A stretch of 64,000 nt of DNA, taken from positions 213,445-277,444 of the IMG/VR virus record IMGVR_UViG_3300034072_002211; one strand, given 5' to 3'. Numbering within the stretch: the stretch's first letter is position 1; each line of letters starts with the position of its first letter. Positions 12,191 through 63,421 of this stretch are shown here, piece by piece. Under the pieces are notes generated by a model. It ran no database searches. It was not told the DNA's origin and was given only the letters and a program-made list of their open reading frames with translations. A program made the position numbers and the translations under genes.

Positions 12191-13885
12191 CTAAGCGTCA
12201 ACCTGTTCGTATTGACGTAACAGCGCAATGGTGTTTCTGAGCCCGTAAGCCACTGTGAAAGCACCGAAACGTGGCCCATCGCTTGAACCCAAGAGACATT
12301 CGTAGAGAGCTTGGAACCATGACCGCAACGGCTCAAACTCATGCTTCTTGCCGACCTCATAGACCTGATACTGATAATGCTCGGCGGTCATGTTTTCGAG
12401 CATCAGAGAGAAACGGGTCGCAAGCTCACTGAATGCTGCCCGCTCCTTCTCGGTGGGTTCTCGGCGAGAACGCTCAAACAGCCCCTTGTCGGTTGCGTAG
12501 GCGATGACCTTGGGAGCCATTTCCCGCGCATAAGCCGCGGTCGCGTCGGCGAACTCACGACCCTGCATCAAGTAAGCGAGCAGGTTCTCTGGCTGCTTGG
12601 CCTGAGCCACAACAGCCAAGTTGAGCATGAGTCCATGGGAGATGTCAGAGCTCAGTGGCTCAGGCAATTCCACGCGGAAGTGCCACGTGGCGTCATCGGG
12701 CGTCGTCTCAGCCTTCTGCCGCAACTTGACATACTGGTCTTCCAGCTGGGGCACGATCTCTCTGTAGAGCTTCTTTGCCGCGCGTGGGTTCTGAAACATG
12801 AACAGCATCAGGGAGCCAGTCGACCCATAGGTCAACCACTGCTCGACCGTAAAGCCGTTGCCCTTGCTCTTGCTGATCTTTGCGCCGTTTTCGTCCAGGA
12901 ACAGTTCATAGGTCAGGTTGAGCGGAGGGGTTCCGCCGAGGATCCGACAGATCTGGTTGGAAGCCTTGACGCTGTCAATGAGGTCCTTGCCAGACATCTC
13001 ATAGTCCACGTCAAAGTAGACCCAGCGCATCGCCCAGTCGACCTTCCACTGAAGCTTGGCATTGCCGTTGTGGCTCATCTGGCCACAGTGCTCACCGTCG
13101 TCCGTGACCCAGCCGATGTATCCACGTGCGCCAGTTGCCTCGGCCTTGACCTGCAGAACAGGGCCCTTGCCACACCAACGCGGCATAAACGGACTGTAGG
13201 TCGCCTTGCGATCATCCCCCAGCGTGGCGAGCATGATCTCCTGAATCTTGTCGAAGTTGTCCCAGACGCGGTTCAGCATCTCGTTGAACTTGCCGGACTT
13301 GTAATAGCGCGAGGAGCTCACAAAGCTCACAGTGCTGCGGTCGGGCGATGCTCCCACTTGGCCGCCATTGTAGTCCTTGAGGATGCGATCCACAAACTCG
13401 CAGAGCTTGTCGTTGTTGGCTTCGGCAAAGGTCATGGGATCAACCATGACTTGCGTGACACCCGGATCGTTGGAATAGGGCGAAGGAACCTCACTGAGCG
13501 GCAGGCCCAGATACTCGTTCATCCACTCGGGCATGTCGTCAGGGACCTTACGCATTGCGTCATAGTCATCCGAGAACATGATCAGACGGGTCTTGTAGGC
13601 GTTCTGCGTGAGCTCATTGAAAGCGCGCATCACCCAGAGGGTGCGGACCACCTCACCAAAGGTGCCGATATGCGGAGCGCCCGAGGGACCATAGCCGGTC
13701 TCAAAGGTCACCACATCACCAGGCTTCTTGCCCTTCTTCTCGATATGAGCGAGAAGGCTGCGGGCCTCCTGGAAGGGCCAAGACTTTGCCTGGTCGAAAA
13801 TGGTAGCCTCCTTTGCCTGCTCTGCTTTGATGGCACGGATCCGCTCGATGAGGGCTTCCTCTTCCCAGCGGTTCATCATAGCCAT
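12191..13885 (-). CDS. lysS: lysyl-tRNA synthetase, class I
   Basis: GYGPSGAPHIGT HIGH, KLQWKVDWAMRW, KISKSKGN, GPRFG. Confidence 0.95.
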   Translation of the reverse strand: MAMMNRWEEEALIERIRAIKAEQAKEATIFDQAKSWPFQEARSLLAHIEKKGKKPGDVVTFETGYGPSGAPHIGTFGEVVRTLWVMRAFNELTQNAYKTRLIMFSDDYDAMRKVPDDMPEWMNEYLGLPLSEVPSPYSNDPGVTQVMVDPMTFAEANNDKLCEFVDRILKDYNGGQVGASPDRSTVSFVSSSRYYKSGKFNEMLNRVWDNFDKIQEIMLATLGDDRKATYSPFMPRWCGKGPVLQVKAEATGARGYIGWVTDDGEHCGQMSHNGNAKLQWKVDWAMRWVYFDVDYEMSGKDLIDSVKASNQICRILGGTPPLNLTYELFLDENGAKISKSKGNGFTVEQWLTYGSTGSLMLFMFQNPRAAKKLYREIVPQLEDQYVKLRQKAETTPDDATWHFRVELPEPLSSDISHGLMLNLAVVAQAKQPENLLAYLMQGREFADATAAYAREMAPKVIAYATDKGLFERSRREPTEKERAAFSELATRFSLMLENMTAEHYQYQVYEVGKKHEFEPLRSWFQALYECLLGSSDGPRFGAFTVAYGLRNTIALLRQYEQVDA

Positions 13886-39700: not shown

Positions 39701-39796
39701 TGGTAGGGGTGGAGGGATTCGAACCCTCGTCGTCGCCTAATCTGGGCTCTCGCAAGGTATAAGCTTGCCCGCTCTTGACCGCTGAGCTACACCCCC
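39701..39796 (-). tRNA. tRNA-Ile(UAU) with long variable arm
   Basis: Cloverleaf, loop CTTATAC, 23-nt variable arm, encoded CCA. Confidence 0.85.
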
Positions 39797-40189: not shown

Positions 40190-40268
40190 TGGTGGCCGTT
40201 GTGGGGCTCGAACCCACAACTCTCAGGGGTTTAGAATCCCCGGCTCTGCCAGCTTGAGCTAAACGGCC
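40190..40268 (-). tRNA. amber suppressor-type tRNA, anticodon CUA
   Basis: Cloverleaf GGCCGTT/AACGGCC, loop TTCTAAA, CCA. Confidence 0.85.
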
Positions 40269-46939: not shown

Positions 46940-48262
46940 TTATGTGACGCGGACCTTATCGTCAAGATATCGCTGACCCATATCCAACTCACTTAGGTAG
47001 TGGCAGTTGAGCATATAGGGGCGAAGAACCTCTGGAATCATGACGTCATCGGTCGTCTGGTAATTCTCCAGAACCGCAACCAAAGTGCGACCAACCGCCA
47101 AGCCAGAGCCATTTAGCGTGTGGGCGTAGAACGTCTCGCCATTGACCTTATAGCGGGTGTTCATACGACGCGCTTGGAAGTCGCCGCAGTTCGAGACGCT
47201 GCTGATCTCGCGGTAGGTGTTCTGGCCAGGAAGCCAGACCTCGATGTCGTAGGTCTTCTGTGCGCTGAACCCCATGTCGCCCGCGCACAATAGCATCGTG
47301 CGATAGGTCAGGTCCAACTTGGCCAGGATCTGCTCCGCGGCGTTGAGCATATAGTCATGCTCATGAGCACTCTGCGAAGGCTCACAGACAGTCACGAGTT
47401 CGACCTTTTGGAACTGATGCTGTCGGATAAGCCCGCGCGTGTCTCGGCCCGCAGAGCCCGCCTCTGAGCGATAGCAATCGGTGAGAGCCACGTAGCGATG
47501 CCGCCCACCCAAAAGGATCTGATCCGCATGAATGTTAGTCAGGCTGACTTCAGCCGTGGGGATCAGGAACTGAGTGGGTTCACTTGCTCCATCCTCATCA
47601 GCAATACCAAAGAGATCCTCTTTGAACTTGGGCAGTTGCCCCGTTCCGTAAAGAGCTTCCTCGTTGACGATGGTGGGAGGGATGACCTCACGGTAGCCGC
47701 GCTTGATCTGTTCATCCAGCATGAACTGTCCGAGAGCACGATGTAGTCGAGCCACCGGACCCTGAAGCATTGAGAAGCGCGAGCCGCTGATCTTTGCCGC
47801 CGCGTCAAAACCCAGATCGACTTGATCCAGTTCATAATGCGGTGTGCCATCCCTTGCGCCGACCTTGCCCCAGCGACGGACTTCCACGTTACTGGTCTCG
47901 TCCGTGCCATCTGGCACATCAGCCGCAGGCACGTTGGGACACATGATCAGGAATGCCTCGAGCATCTCTTCAGCGTGAGTTGCCTGAGCAGCCCACATTG
48001 TTTCATTTTGCTTGAGAAGCTTCACCAACTCCTTGAGGGCGTCAGCTGAAGCAGTATTACCCTCCTTCATGGCTTTGCCAATTTCCTGACTCTTGGCCTT
48101 GATTAGGCTGCGAGTGTCCTGAAGCCTCGTGAGCGCATCGCTACGGCGGCTTGCGAACTGCTGGATCTTGTCGATGTGGGGATCGTGCCCGCGGCGCTTC
48201 ATAGCAGCCACGAACTCATCCGGCTTAGCCAGGATGCCCTTGACGTCAAAGTGATACTTCAT
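46940..48262 (-). CDS. serS: seryl-tRNA synthetase
   Basis: GTGQLPKF, PTAEV, CYRSEAG, HQFQKVE, YREISS, HTLNGSGLAVGR. Confidence 0.97.
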   Translation of the reverse strand: MKYHFDVKGILAKPDEFVAAMKRRGHDPHIDKIQQFASRRSDALTRLQDTRSLIKAKSQEIGKAMKEGNTASADALKELVKLLKQNETMWAAQATHAEEMLEAFLIMCPNVPAADVPDGTDETSNVEVRRWGKVGARDGTPHYELDQVDLGFDAAAKISGSRFSMLQGPVARLHRALGQFMLDEQIKRGYREVIPPTIVNEEALYGTGQLPKFKEDLFGIADEDGASEPTQFLIPTAEVSLTNIHADQILLGGRHRYVALTDCYRSEAGSAGRDTRGLIRQHQFQKVELVTVCEPSQSAHEHDYMLNAAEQILAKLDLTYRTMLLCAGDMGFSAQKTYDIEVWLPGQNTYREISSVSNCGDFQARRMNTRYKVNGETFYAHTLNGSGLAVGRTLVAVLENYQTTDDVMIPEVLRPYMLNCHYLSELDMGQRYLDDKVRVT

Positions 48263-48339
48263 AGTGCCAGCTTGCTTCCAAATTGGAATAGAGTCAACCA
48301 TTCATGGCGAAGCCCCGGAGCGTCCTCCGGGGCTTGCTC

Positions 48340-56702: not shown

Positions 56703-56785
56703 TAGGGGCGGAGAGATTCGAACTCTCAAAAACCACCGATTTTAAGCCGGCAGGGTGTTCCGGTTTCCCACTAGGTCACGCCCCC
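56703..56785 (-). tRNA. tRNA-Leu(UAA), atypical arms
   Basis: Loop CTTAAAA; long D region and short variable arm. Confidence 0.75.
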
Positions 56786-59357: not shown

Positions 59358-60290
59358 TCAGTCGAGCAAGCTGCTGACTGACTGCTCATCCGAGATGCGC
59401 TTGATTGCCTCTGCGAGCAATGGCGCCACGGTGAGCTGCCGGATCTTCTCCGCGCCGTGTTCCAGCGGGATGGTGTCCGTGATGACCAGTTCTTTGAGCG
59501 AACTATTGGCGACTCGTTCCAGAGCCTGCCCACTCAATACACCGTGGGTGCAGTATGCCGAAACGTCGCTTGCGCCAGCCTCTATGAGGGCCTTGGCAGC
59601 ATTGCAGAGCGTTCCCGCGCTGTCCACGATATCGTCGATGAGAATGCAGGACTTGCCCGAAACGTCACCGATGATGTTCATGACCTCCGACACACCGGCC
59701 TTTTCGCGGCGCTTGTCCACAATAGCAAGGGGTGCGTTCTCGAGGCGCTTTGCGAGCGCACGAGCCCGAACCACACCGCCAACGTCTGGGCTTACAACAC
59801 AAAGGTTGTCAATGACCATGCGGGCACGAATGTCTGCCGCGATCACTGGAGCAGCCGCGAGGTTGTCCGTGGGAATATCGAAGAAGCCCTGGATCTGACC
59901 AGCGTGGAGGTCGAGAGCCAACACACGATCCGCACCAGCAGCCGTGATCAAGTTGGCGACCAGCTTCGCGCTAATCGGCGTCCGAGGACCAGGCTTACGG
60001 TCTTGTCGAGCGTAGCCATAATAGGGAGTAACTGCCGTGATCCTGCGAGCCGAAGCGCGCTTGAGCGCATCGACGAGAACCAGGAGTTCCATGAGGTTGT
60101 CGTTGACCGGATTGCAGGTGCTCTGGAGGATGAATACATCCTCACCGCGCACGTTCTCCTTGATCTCCACGAAGATCTCTTCGTCTGCGAACCGACGAAC
60201 ACGGGCGTCAACGAGTGGAACCTCGAGATAGTCCGAGATGTTCTTTGCCAACTCTAGGTTGGCATTTCCGGCCAGCAGCTTCATCGTCAA
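59358..60290 (-). CDS. prs: ribose-phosphate pyrophosphokinase
   Basis: [38 protein letters not shown]. Confidence 0.97.
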
Positions 60291-61504: not shown

Positions 61505-61575
61505 TGGAGCCCCTACTAGGATTCGAACCTAGCCTCCAGCGTTCGAAGCGCCGGGTCCTGTCCACAGGCAGAGGC
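61505..61575 (-). tRNA. tRNA-Arg(UCG), short D arm
   Basis: Loop CTTCGAA, CCA; 71 nt. Confidence 0.8.
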
Positions 61576-61582
61576 AAGTTAG

Positions 61583-62291: not shown

Positions 62292-62367
62292 TGGTTGCGG
62301 AGGTCGGATTTGAACCGACGTGCTTCTGGTTATGAGCCAGACGAGATAACCACTCCTCTACCCCGCG
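62292..62367 (-). tRNA. initiator tRNA-fMet(CAU)
   Basis: C1-A72 mismatch, loop CTCATAA, CCA. Confidence 0.9.
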
Positions 62368-62411
62368 TCAAAACTGTTAGTTGGGCTTGCGCTTTGCGTC
62401 AAGACCCTTTG

Positions 62412-62597
62412 TGGAGCCGAGGGGATTCGAACCCCCACAACGCGCTGACCCTAGCATTACCAAGGGCTGGTGTGTAGGTTCAAAGACTCGTCGCGAGCCT
62501 GTAAAAAATATCCCACACCATCTTACGCAGCTCGTCGGATTTTACTCCGAATCGCCCTGTCTTTTGCGACTGCCTGTCCCTCTAGGCGGACGGCCCC
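62412..62597 (-). ncRNA. minimal tmRNA-like RNA, 186 nt
   Basis: GGGGCCG/CGGCTCC-A acceptor with G3-U70, canonical T arm, internal reading frame DELRKMVWDIFYRLATSL-stop. Confidence 0.55.
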
Positions 62598-62605
62598 ATA
62601 GGTAT

Positions 62606-62681
62606 TGGTGCTAAGGGCGGGAATCGAACCCACTTCCTCCGATTTTCAGCCGGGTGCATTGACCACAGTTGCTTCCTTAGC
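62606..62681 (-). tRNA. tRNA-Phe(GAA)
   Basis: Loop CTGAAAA, CCA. Confidence 0.9.
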
Positions 62682-63134: not shown

Positions 63135-63141
63135 ATGTTCA

Positions 63142-63421
63142 ATCTCGAAGATCCGTAGCCGCGATCCTGTTCTATGCTACAATCTACCTCGCCAGGATTT
63201 CTCCTGACGGCCTCGGCATTACCCGATGGAGACTTACTGCCTCCTGGCTGCACCAACCCGTCCCAATAGCAGGGGAATTACCTAGGACTGTTTGGCTTGC
63301 TGGCTTAATCACGGTGGTCTCTTCCCTTGTGTCGGGGTATCACCCCAACTCCCACTCGTTCCCCACGCCAGTCGCGAACTTCCTCAAAGCTTTCGCCCTG
63401 CTGTAGCTCGACCGTCGAGAT
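63142..63421 (-). ncRNA. rnpB: RNase P RNA with reduced specificity domain, 280 nt
   Basis: P1 ATCTCGA/TCGAGAT, P2 GCTACAG/TTGTAGC, P3 GAAA hairpin, CR-I GAGGAAGTTCGCGA pairing CR-V ACAGGATCGCGGCT as P4 with bulged U, P5 CTGGC/GCCAG, CR-IV CAGCAAG. Confidence 0.9.

Follow-up and report, generated by a model that had tools for sequence, protein, structure and literature searches.

A tRNA-like gene in a phage tRNA array

Huge phages carry large translation toolkits that include tRNAs, aminoacyl-tRNA synthetases, tmRNA and SmpB. The stretch of DNA analyzed here (64,000 nt, designated the window) forms the last 64 kb of a 277-kb IMG/VR record with an estimated completeness of 60%, and within an array of 21 tRNA genes it contains an RNA gene whose two ends resemble those of an alanine tRNA. 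A preliminary description of the locus had proposed a half-size tmRNA, either a minimal rescue RNA that adds a non-degron tag or a sponge for SmpB. The question is whether this element is a reduced tmRNA, an altered tRNA or an RNA of a different kind.

The element is 186 nt long and occupies positions 62412–62597 on the minus strand, which is also the strand of the array, with G1 at 62597 and the discriminator A73 at 62412. It is located 8 nt downstream of tRNA-Phe(GAA) (62606–62681, minus strand; the same synteny is found in relatives L170 and L231) and 44 nt upstream of tRNA-Met(CAU) (62292–62367, minus strand). Read directly from the sequence, the 5' end GGGGCCG (62591–62597) and the 3' end CGGCUCC (62413–62419) form a 7-bp acceptor stem that includes G3·U70 (U70 at 62415) and is followed by A73; CCA is not encoded, and CAA directly follows the discriminator. 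A T arm (GGGGG-UUCGAAU-CCCCU, 62420–62436) lies just 5' of the acceptor 3' strand. The Ala-type acceptor and T arm reported in the preliminary description are therefore present and are joined by an insert, but the distance from the 5' acceptor strand to the T stem is 154 nt and not ∼120 nt, and a 4-bp D-like stem had been missed. We estimate that a 7-bp complement would occur by chance within 200 nt of a stray T arm in roughly 5–20% of cases. Comparative sequence evidence indicates that the 186-nt unit is a real gene, because its whole architecture is repeated, with compensatory changes, in about 13 independent lineages. The boundaries of the element also agree with those of its homologs, which are separated from adjoining tRNAs by 0–9 nt.

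Standard detectors did not call the element. ARAGORN was negative for tmRNA both in the window and across the whole record, and at gathering thresholds Rfam reported only tRNAs in the window. The model of alpha-type permuted tmRNA (RF01849) had no match in the record, and the element matched neither the Rfam tRNA model (RF00005) nor Rfam introns. The only Rfam family that matched it end to end was tmRNA (RF00023), with 20.9 bits against a cut-off of 47, a score that ordinary tRNAs reach as well. Members of the family described below scored 20.9–31.7 bits with this model, all under the cut-off, and in the alignment of one relative only the acceptor, D-loop and T arm were matched, with 326 model positions skipped. 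The ARAGORN and covariance-model searches proposed as a check of the tmRNA assignment thus gave a negative answer. What stands of that assignment is a non-tRNA gene with an Ala-type acceptor and a T arm, to which tmRNA is the nearest family by model score; its tag reading is not supported (see below).

Several other features of the window were recorded. Genes at 12191–13885, 46940–48301 and 59358–60290, all on the minus strand, encode a lysyl-tRNA synthetase of class I, a seryl-tRNA synthetase and a PRPP synthetase, respectively, and represent a large set of translation and nucleotide functions typical of huge phages. The best tmRNA-model match in the record (28.1 bits) was a tRNA-Ile(UAU) of 96 nt, ∼20 nt longer than normal (39701–39796, minus strand). 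Two tRNA genes with anticodon CUA, labeled "Pyl" by ARAGORN and of the amber-suppressor type, were found at 40190–40268 (minus strand) and at G000:C1:28717–28792; some genes of the phage may use TAG as a sense codon or be translated through it. A non-tRNA block of ∼230 nt within the tRNA array (63135–63361) was 85% identical to L170:2625–2854 and had no T-arm motif; it may represent a further conserved non-coding RNA, or else a small gene. Positions 61505–61576 were 90% identical to tRNA-Arg(UCG) of L170 with no ARAGORN call in the window, and positions 56703–56785 gave a weak Rfam tRNA match (30.5 bits), also with no ARAGORN call.

Distribution of homologs

BLAST searches against cultured phages detected homologous, unannotated copies in seven Brevundimonas pondensis jumbo phages (Dolichocephalovirinae, genomes of 312–357 kb); they fill a gap flanked by two tRNA-Ser genes and are 215 nt long (218 nt with an encoded CCA). 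Scans with the invariant GGUAAUGC loop and the T arm identified four members in IMG/VR contigs of 436–608 kb that CheckV rates as complete; the members in IMG/VR huge-phage contigs are L170, L146, L104 and L201, and further members were present in metagenome contigs. One member was found in an isolate genome, Pararhizobium sp. BT-229, where it belongs to an array of 15 tRNAs with genes for aminoacyl-tRNA synthetase and DNA methylase next to it. About 13 homologous lineages were recognized, and wherever flanks were available the gene was inside a tRNA array and on the tRNA strand. Family members are about 176–218 nt long and occur in a short form of 176–189 nt, which includes the window copy, and a long form of about 212–216 nt before any encoded CCA. 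The family is absent from Rfam 15 and was not found in open-access literature text, and it appears to be previously undescribed.

Other searches were less productive. An exact 22-mer and a strict loop-plus-T-arm pattern had no match in viral contigs, and no copy of the element was present in 80 loci around relatives of the neighboring PRPP synthetase. The pattern AAGATGGT...T arm matched by chance only and was discarded, and a 19-mer HP4 pattern gave four chance matches next to the true ones. A chance pattern match also brought up two unrelated viral contigs, in which ARAGORN predicted a tRNA whose anticodon has four bases (aatc; L016:2908–2981 and L017:8560–8633).

In Pararhizobium sp. BT-229, a region of a 1.6-Mb contig (G005:C3:180001–220000; L260 and L261) contains two dense tRNA arrays with 21 tRNAs, accompanied by Trp/Tyr-type and His-type synthetase genes, DNA methylases and one family member. 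A second copy of alpha tmRNA is located 640 kb away on the same contig. This region may represent a huge prophage or else an island of phage origin.

Conserved fold of the RNA

A common architecture was obtained by folding the 5' parts and by searching for the best duplexes between defined segments of each sequence. From 5' to 3', it consists of the acceptor 5' strand, 2–3 nt, a 4-bp D stem, one purine, hairpins HP2 and HP3, and the 5' strands of helices P5 and Pa, followed by an inner segment (about 20–25 nt in the short form and about 50 nt in the long form), a pseudoknot strand, the Pa 3' strand, hairpin HP4, the P5 3' strand, 2–5 nt, the T arm, the acceptor 3' strand and A73. The coordinates given below are all on the minus strand of the window.

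In the acceptor stem, G2-C71, G3·U70 and A73 are invariant in every member, and G1-C72 is present in all but L227 (U1·C72). Pairs 4–7 covary, with five complementary forms of the 5' strand (GGGGCCG, GGGGGCG, GGGGACG, GGGGAUG and GGGCCUG). G3·U70 is an established alanine identity element, and the combination of fixed pairs 1–3 and A73 with variable pairs 4–7 is what selection for recognition by AlaRS would be expected to produce. The D-like arm (62572–62587) has the stem GCCU/AGGC and an 8-nt loop, AGAGGGAC; its stem covaries, with GCUC/GAGC, GCCA/UGGC and GCAC/GUGC in other lineages. In the T arm, pair 50:64 is G-C in the window and C-G in other lineages.

HP2 (62551–62570) is located at the position of the anticodon arm and has a covarying 5-bp stem and a purine-rich loop of 10 nt; across the family, the stem is 4–6 bp and the loop 8–13 nt. 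U33 and a 7-nt loop are absent. A strand within the HP2 loop, AAAGAC (62559–62564), pairs with GUCUUU (62482–62487) to form a pseudoknot, and the partner strand is always found 12–14 nt before HP4. The two strands change together: AAAGAC/GUCUUU in the window and L170, AAAAC/GUUUU in L231, AGGAA/UUCCU in L237 and L201, GGAAC/GUUCU in the Brevundimonas phages and L146, AGAACAG/CUGUUCU in L104, and AAAACG/CGUUUU in L239.

HP3 (62535–62550) has a covarying 5-bp stem (UCGGA/UCCGA, UCAGG/CCUGA, UCCGG/CCGGG and UUUGG/CCAAG in the family) and the hexaloop GUAAAA, with GUAAAU, GUGACA and GUAACA as variants. P5 is an H2-like closing helix at the position of the class II variable arm; its 5' strand CGAGCUG (62528–62534) pairs with CAGCGCG (62441–62447), which lies 4 nt before the T stem, and its sequence varies between lineages while complementarity is kept in every one. 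In Pa, GGUGUGGG (62512–62519) pairs with CCUACACACC (62469–62478), leaving a 2-nt bulge, and covariation is strong. HP4 (62448–62467) consists of GCCCUU, the 8-nt loop GGUAAUGC and UAGGGU; its loop is invariant in all members, and stem positions 5 and 6 covary (U-A, U-G, C-G and G-C).

Covariation was measured without an alignment because MAFFT alignments misplaced the helices (the D stem, HP2, P5, Pa and pseudoknot in alignments A1 and A3). We compared within-sequence with between-sequence duplex energy in 10 lineages, using 20,000 permutations. All helices, including the pseudoknot, were far more complementary within one sequence than between lineages: the observed value was reached by 0 permutations for Pa, HP2 and HP3, 6 for the acceptor, 9 for the pseudoknot, 18 for P5, 29 for the T stem and 47 for HP4, counts that are not probabilities because shared ancestry among the about 10 independent lineages is uncorrected. 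For the window copy, the proposed fold has an energy of −69.3 kcal/mol and the unconstrained minimum is −73.5 kcal/mol, and in folding the pseudoknot strand has a competitor in a local hairpin. We also considered a kissing interaction of the GUAAAA loop with a U-run; it fitted four of five short-form members and none of the long form, and was dropped.

The proposed reading frame

The preliminary description had placed a short frame in the insert. This frame, DELRKMVWDIFYRLATSL-UGA, is present (GAC ... UGA, 62480–62536, minus strand), but the motif that precedes it is GGAGUAAAAUCC, with four A, and not GAGTAAATCC. It overlies covarying elements of the fold (P5, Pa and the pseudoknot strand), and its coding is not conserved. 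The frame is intact in L170, the closest relative. In L231, UGG is replaced by UAG and there is a 2-nt net deletion; in L237, UGA occurs after 5 codons; and L201 has several stops. Indels of 1, 2 and 5 nt were found among the relatives, and substitutions at codon positions 1/2/3 (5/5/4, 6/10/5 and 8/10/7) showed no third-position bias. The first base of the UGA "stop" is also the last one of the pseudoknot strand, and CAA-type triplets are present instead in 4 of 11 lineages. Examination of all three frames of 16 members revealed no conserved frame, resume site, start context or stop. The in-frame stops, the indels that are not multiples of three, the even distribution of substitutions and the covarying helices suggest a folded RNA domain and not a message. 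Judged by these comparisons, the insert is such a domain and encodes no conserved tag.

Four other candidate coding signals were rejected. A AKDRAIRSKIRRAA-stop frame that starts in the HP2 loop and has a degron-like AA end is not conserved (...GKT in L170 and ...DSE in L231). A likeness around "LRKMV" and indels of 3n between the window and the Brevundimonas copies arose where MAFFT joined non-homologous positions, and the structure places this block elsewhere. A stop right after the pseudoknot strand was considered as a family feature and is found in only 7 of 11 lineages. Finally, every member has an open frame that ends at the UAA of the invariant GGUAAUGC loop, and chance alone is expected to give frames of at least 12 codons about half the time.

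tmRNA, SmpB and AlaRS in carrier genomes

A canonical alpha-type two-piece tmRNA (65–102 bits) was identified elsewhere in three of four complete carrier genomes (G002, G003 and G004), including G003, the closest complete relative of the window. The tags of these tmRNAs are ANDNVAVSEYALAA and ...NDNDVVEALAA, with the ...ALAA degron. Because a canonical tmRNA coexists in the same genomes, the element is a separate gene and not the tmRNA of the phage. Caulobacter phages phiCbK and CcrColossus, which belong to the same subfamily as the Brevundimonas phages, carry an ordinary permuted tmRNA in their tRNA arrays.

ARAGORN found no tmRNA in the Brevundimonas jumbo phages according to their description (PMC10070969). 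At another locus of these phages, the alpha-tmRNA model gave near-threshold matches of 39–46.8 bits with a cut-off of 50 (ON529852.1, 194558–194674; ON529857.1, 154505–154971; ON529850.1, 153967–154173), suggesting that they probably carry a two-piece tmRNA, though they were published as lacking one.

The fourth complete genome, G001 (543 kb, 66 tRNAs), encodes an intact SmpB (176 bits, G001:C1:449907–450335), and neither the three Rfam tmRNA models nor ARAGORN detected a tmRNA in its whole 543 kb. Among nine phage genomes checked, the window record included, it was the only one to encode SmpB, and this single case keeps a link to SmpB possible. AlaRS was absent from all but one of the genomes checked, and charging of the element would therefore depend on the host.

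Contigs in RNA libraries

The phage of the window itself was not detected in RNA runs and was found only in a subsurface DNA metagenome. With the element alone as query, RNA-labeled runs were found, and the four examined contained contigs of a ∼92% identical relative. These contigs cover positions 62410–62599 colinearly and with no joints, in Logan assembled contigs for which DNA carry-over is possible. Three of them are just 159–252 nt long, the contigs reach 20–35 nt beyond the 5' end of the element, and in one run the word depth was about 160. The variant has three compensatory changes in P5, and its T-stem pair 50:64 is also compensatory. Such contigs fit a stable, unspliced RNA, and splicing to an ordinary tRNA, a possibility raised in the preliminary description, was not seen. 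RNA-labeled runs X17, X23 and X24, which contain this relative, are filed under several different organisms; the phage or bacterium that carries it may often accompany or contaminate these samples.

Comparison with known RNAs

The element shares several features with tmRNA (RF00023; permuted alpha forms RF01849 and RF04321): a 7-bp acceptor that starts with GGG and has G3·U70 and A73, with CCA in most members; a T arm of canonical type; a long helix (P5 and helix 2, respectively) whose exit from the core is immediately 5' of this arm; a body folded by pseudoknotting that separates the two tRNA-like halves; and a location in phage tRNA arrays, as in phiCbK. However, the element is half the size of tmRNA or less, and it has a single long-range pseudoknot of another topology instead of PK1 ahead of the frame and PK2–PK4 behind it. 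It also contains no conserved frame, resume site or degron. Whereas tmRNA has a D-loop without a D stem and lacks an anticodon arm, both a covarying D stem and a hairpin at the anticodon-arm position (HP2) are present here.

The closest described analog in context and layout is T4 species 1 RNA (rnaC), as an architectural class and not as a homology family. This small stable RNA of the T4 tRNA cluster is likewise encoded by a non-tRNA gene directly adjoining phage tRNA genes. Its termini form an acceptor-like stem, a canonical T arm (CCGGG-UUCGAAU-CCCGG) is found close to the 3' end, and additional hairpins of about 100 nt in total separate the two. However, rnaC is 139 nt long, has no detectable sequence similarity to the element, lacks G3·U70 and contains U·U mismatches in its terminal stem. 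Class II tRNAs resemble the element in their purine at position 26, in a cloverleaf core built of acceptor, D and T arms, and in extra helices between the anticodon-arm position and the T stem. In contrast to these tRNAs, the element has a loop of 8–13 nt that lacks U33 and is paired internally, a "variable region" of 100–140 nt with two helices, and neither an RF00005 match nor an ARAGORN call. Aminoacylatable viral tRNA-like structures, such as those of plant-virus 3' ends, and the bacterial tRNA-like Y RNA YrlA are also viral or mobile RNAs that copy the tRNA shape to use host tRNA enzymes. Those RNAs are genome 3' ends or circularly permuted mimics with a closed acceptor, whereas the element is a free-standing gene with open tRNA-type termini, and it had no Rfam match of this kind.

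Possible functions

We infer, with a fair degree of confidence, that the element belongs to a new family of alanine-accepting, non-decoding tRNA/tmRNA-like RNAs encoded in the tRNA arrays of huge phages that infect Alphaproteobacteria. From the coexistence of a canonical tmRNA and the comparisons of reading frames, we conclude that it is neither the tmRNA of the phage nor the carrier of a conserved tag. It would be transcribed with the array and excised by RNase P and the 3'-end tRNA processing enzymes; identity elements and context suggest that it would then receive CCA and be alanylated by host AlaRS. It would be unable to decode because it has no free anticodon, the loop at that position being locked in the pseudoknot, and it would most likely act on the translation apparatus as a non-decoding mimic of alanyl-tRNA. 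Identity elements and context point to two live options for its function, a ribosome-directed role with codon-independent entry into the A site and a decoy role.

In the second option, the element would be a tRNA-Ala look-alike that, charged or not, acts off the ribosome by binding AlaRS, a tRNA-directed defense nuclease, SmpB, EF-Tu or a modification enzyme; the SmpB sponge of the preliminary description is one such case. We regard this as possible but rather unlikely. The tRNA-like core and its identity elements are conserved, the anticodon-equivalent loop is sequestered, and two conserved exposed loops, GUAAAA and the invariant GGUAAUGC, resemble binding sites. The genes are located in phage tRNA arrays, which are thought to offset host attacks on tRNA. 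However, no candidate partner or consistently co-occurring protein gene was found, with AlaRS mostly absent and SmpB so rare in the genomes checked, and a decoy for an anticodon nuclease would not need alanine identity.

A more specific form of the ribosome-directed role can be drawn from structure. The exit of P5 corresponds to that of tmRNA helix 2 and of a long variable arm, and in the solved complex of SmpB with the tRNA-like domain, SmpB fills the space of the D stem and anticodon arm. By this structural comparison, the parts that SmpB mimics on tmRNA would be made of RNA in the element, with an internal strand occupying the anticodon-equivalent loop. The element may thus be an analog of the tmRNA-SmpB complex, in which the D arm, the anticodon-arm hairpin and a codon-anticodon-like pseudoknot replace SmpB and which provides tag-less, alanine-donating rescue at an empty A site, or it may be a partner of phage SmpB in genomes such as G001. 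This pair of options is speculative, and we consider it doubtful.

An equally doubtful alternative is a minimal one-piece tmRNA that, once alanylated, would join SmpB on stalled ribosomes and append a short non-degron peptide encoded by an internal frame. Consistent with it are the strictly conserved alanine-type tRNA-like domain, tmRNA as the best Rfam match, a tmRNA-like D-loop (GGUUUCG) in long-form members, P5 at the position of helix 2, some open frame with a stop within ∼20 codons in each member, and G001, in which SmpB is encoded and no tmRNA is detectable. However, the non-degron tag is not supported by a candidate frame that consists of covarying helices, has no bias among codon positions and is broken by stops and frameshifts in relatives, with neither resume site nor stop conserved. 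In addition, model scores are under the cut-off and ARAGORN is negative, the covarying D stem and anticodon-arm hairpin fill the space that SmpB takes in the solved complex, and a canonical tmRNA with an ALAA tag is already present in three of the four complete genomes. It is very improbable that the element is an intron-containing or decayed tRNA-Ala with an insert of ∼110 nt that is spliced out or junk. Its acceptor and its D and T arms resemble those of a tRNA and the gene lies in a tRNA array, but the insert is located in the variable region instead of the anticodon loop, and without it a hairpin remains whose 10-nt loop has neither U33 nor an Ala anticodon. Conservation and covariation of the insert extend over about 13 lineages, Rfam gives no intron or tRNA match, and the RNA-library contigs of the 92% relative are colinear with no joints.

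Implications for phage translation systems

Surveys of phage translation genes use ARAGORN and tRNAscan (PMC7162821, PMC10070969), and these programs miss this gene. Because members occur in cultured Brevundimonas pondensis phages, charging, binding to the ribosome or SmpB, and the contribution to phage fitness are directly testable. The combination of a tRNA core, an H2-like arm and a locked anticodon loop bears on a possible origin of tmRNA from a tRNA with a long variable arm, and if the reading as an SmpB analog or SmpB partner is true, the element would stand between class II tRNA and tmRNA in its structure. A conserved, alanine-type, non-decoding tRNA mimic that exists beside a normal tmRNA would imply a further route by which these phages reach the translation or tRNA machinery of the host.
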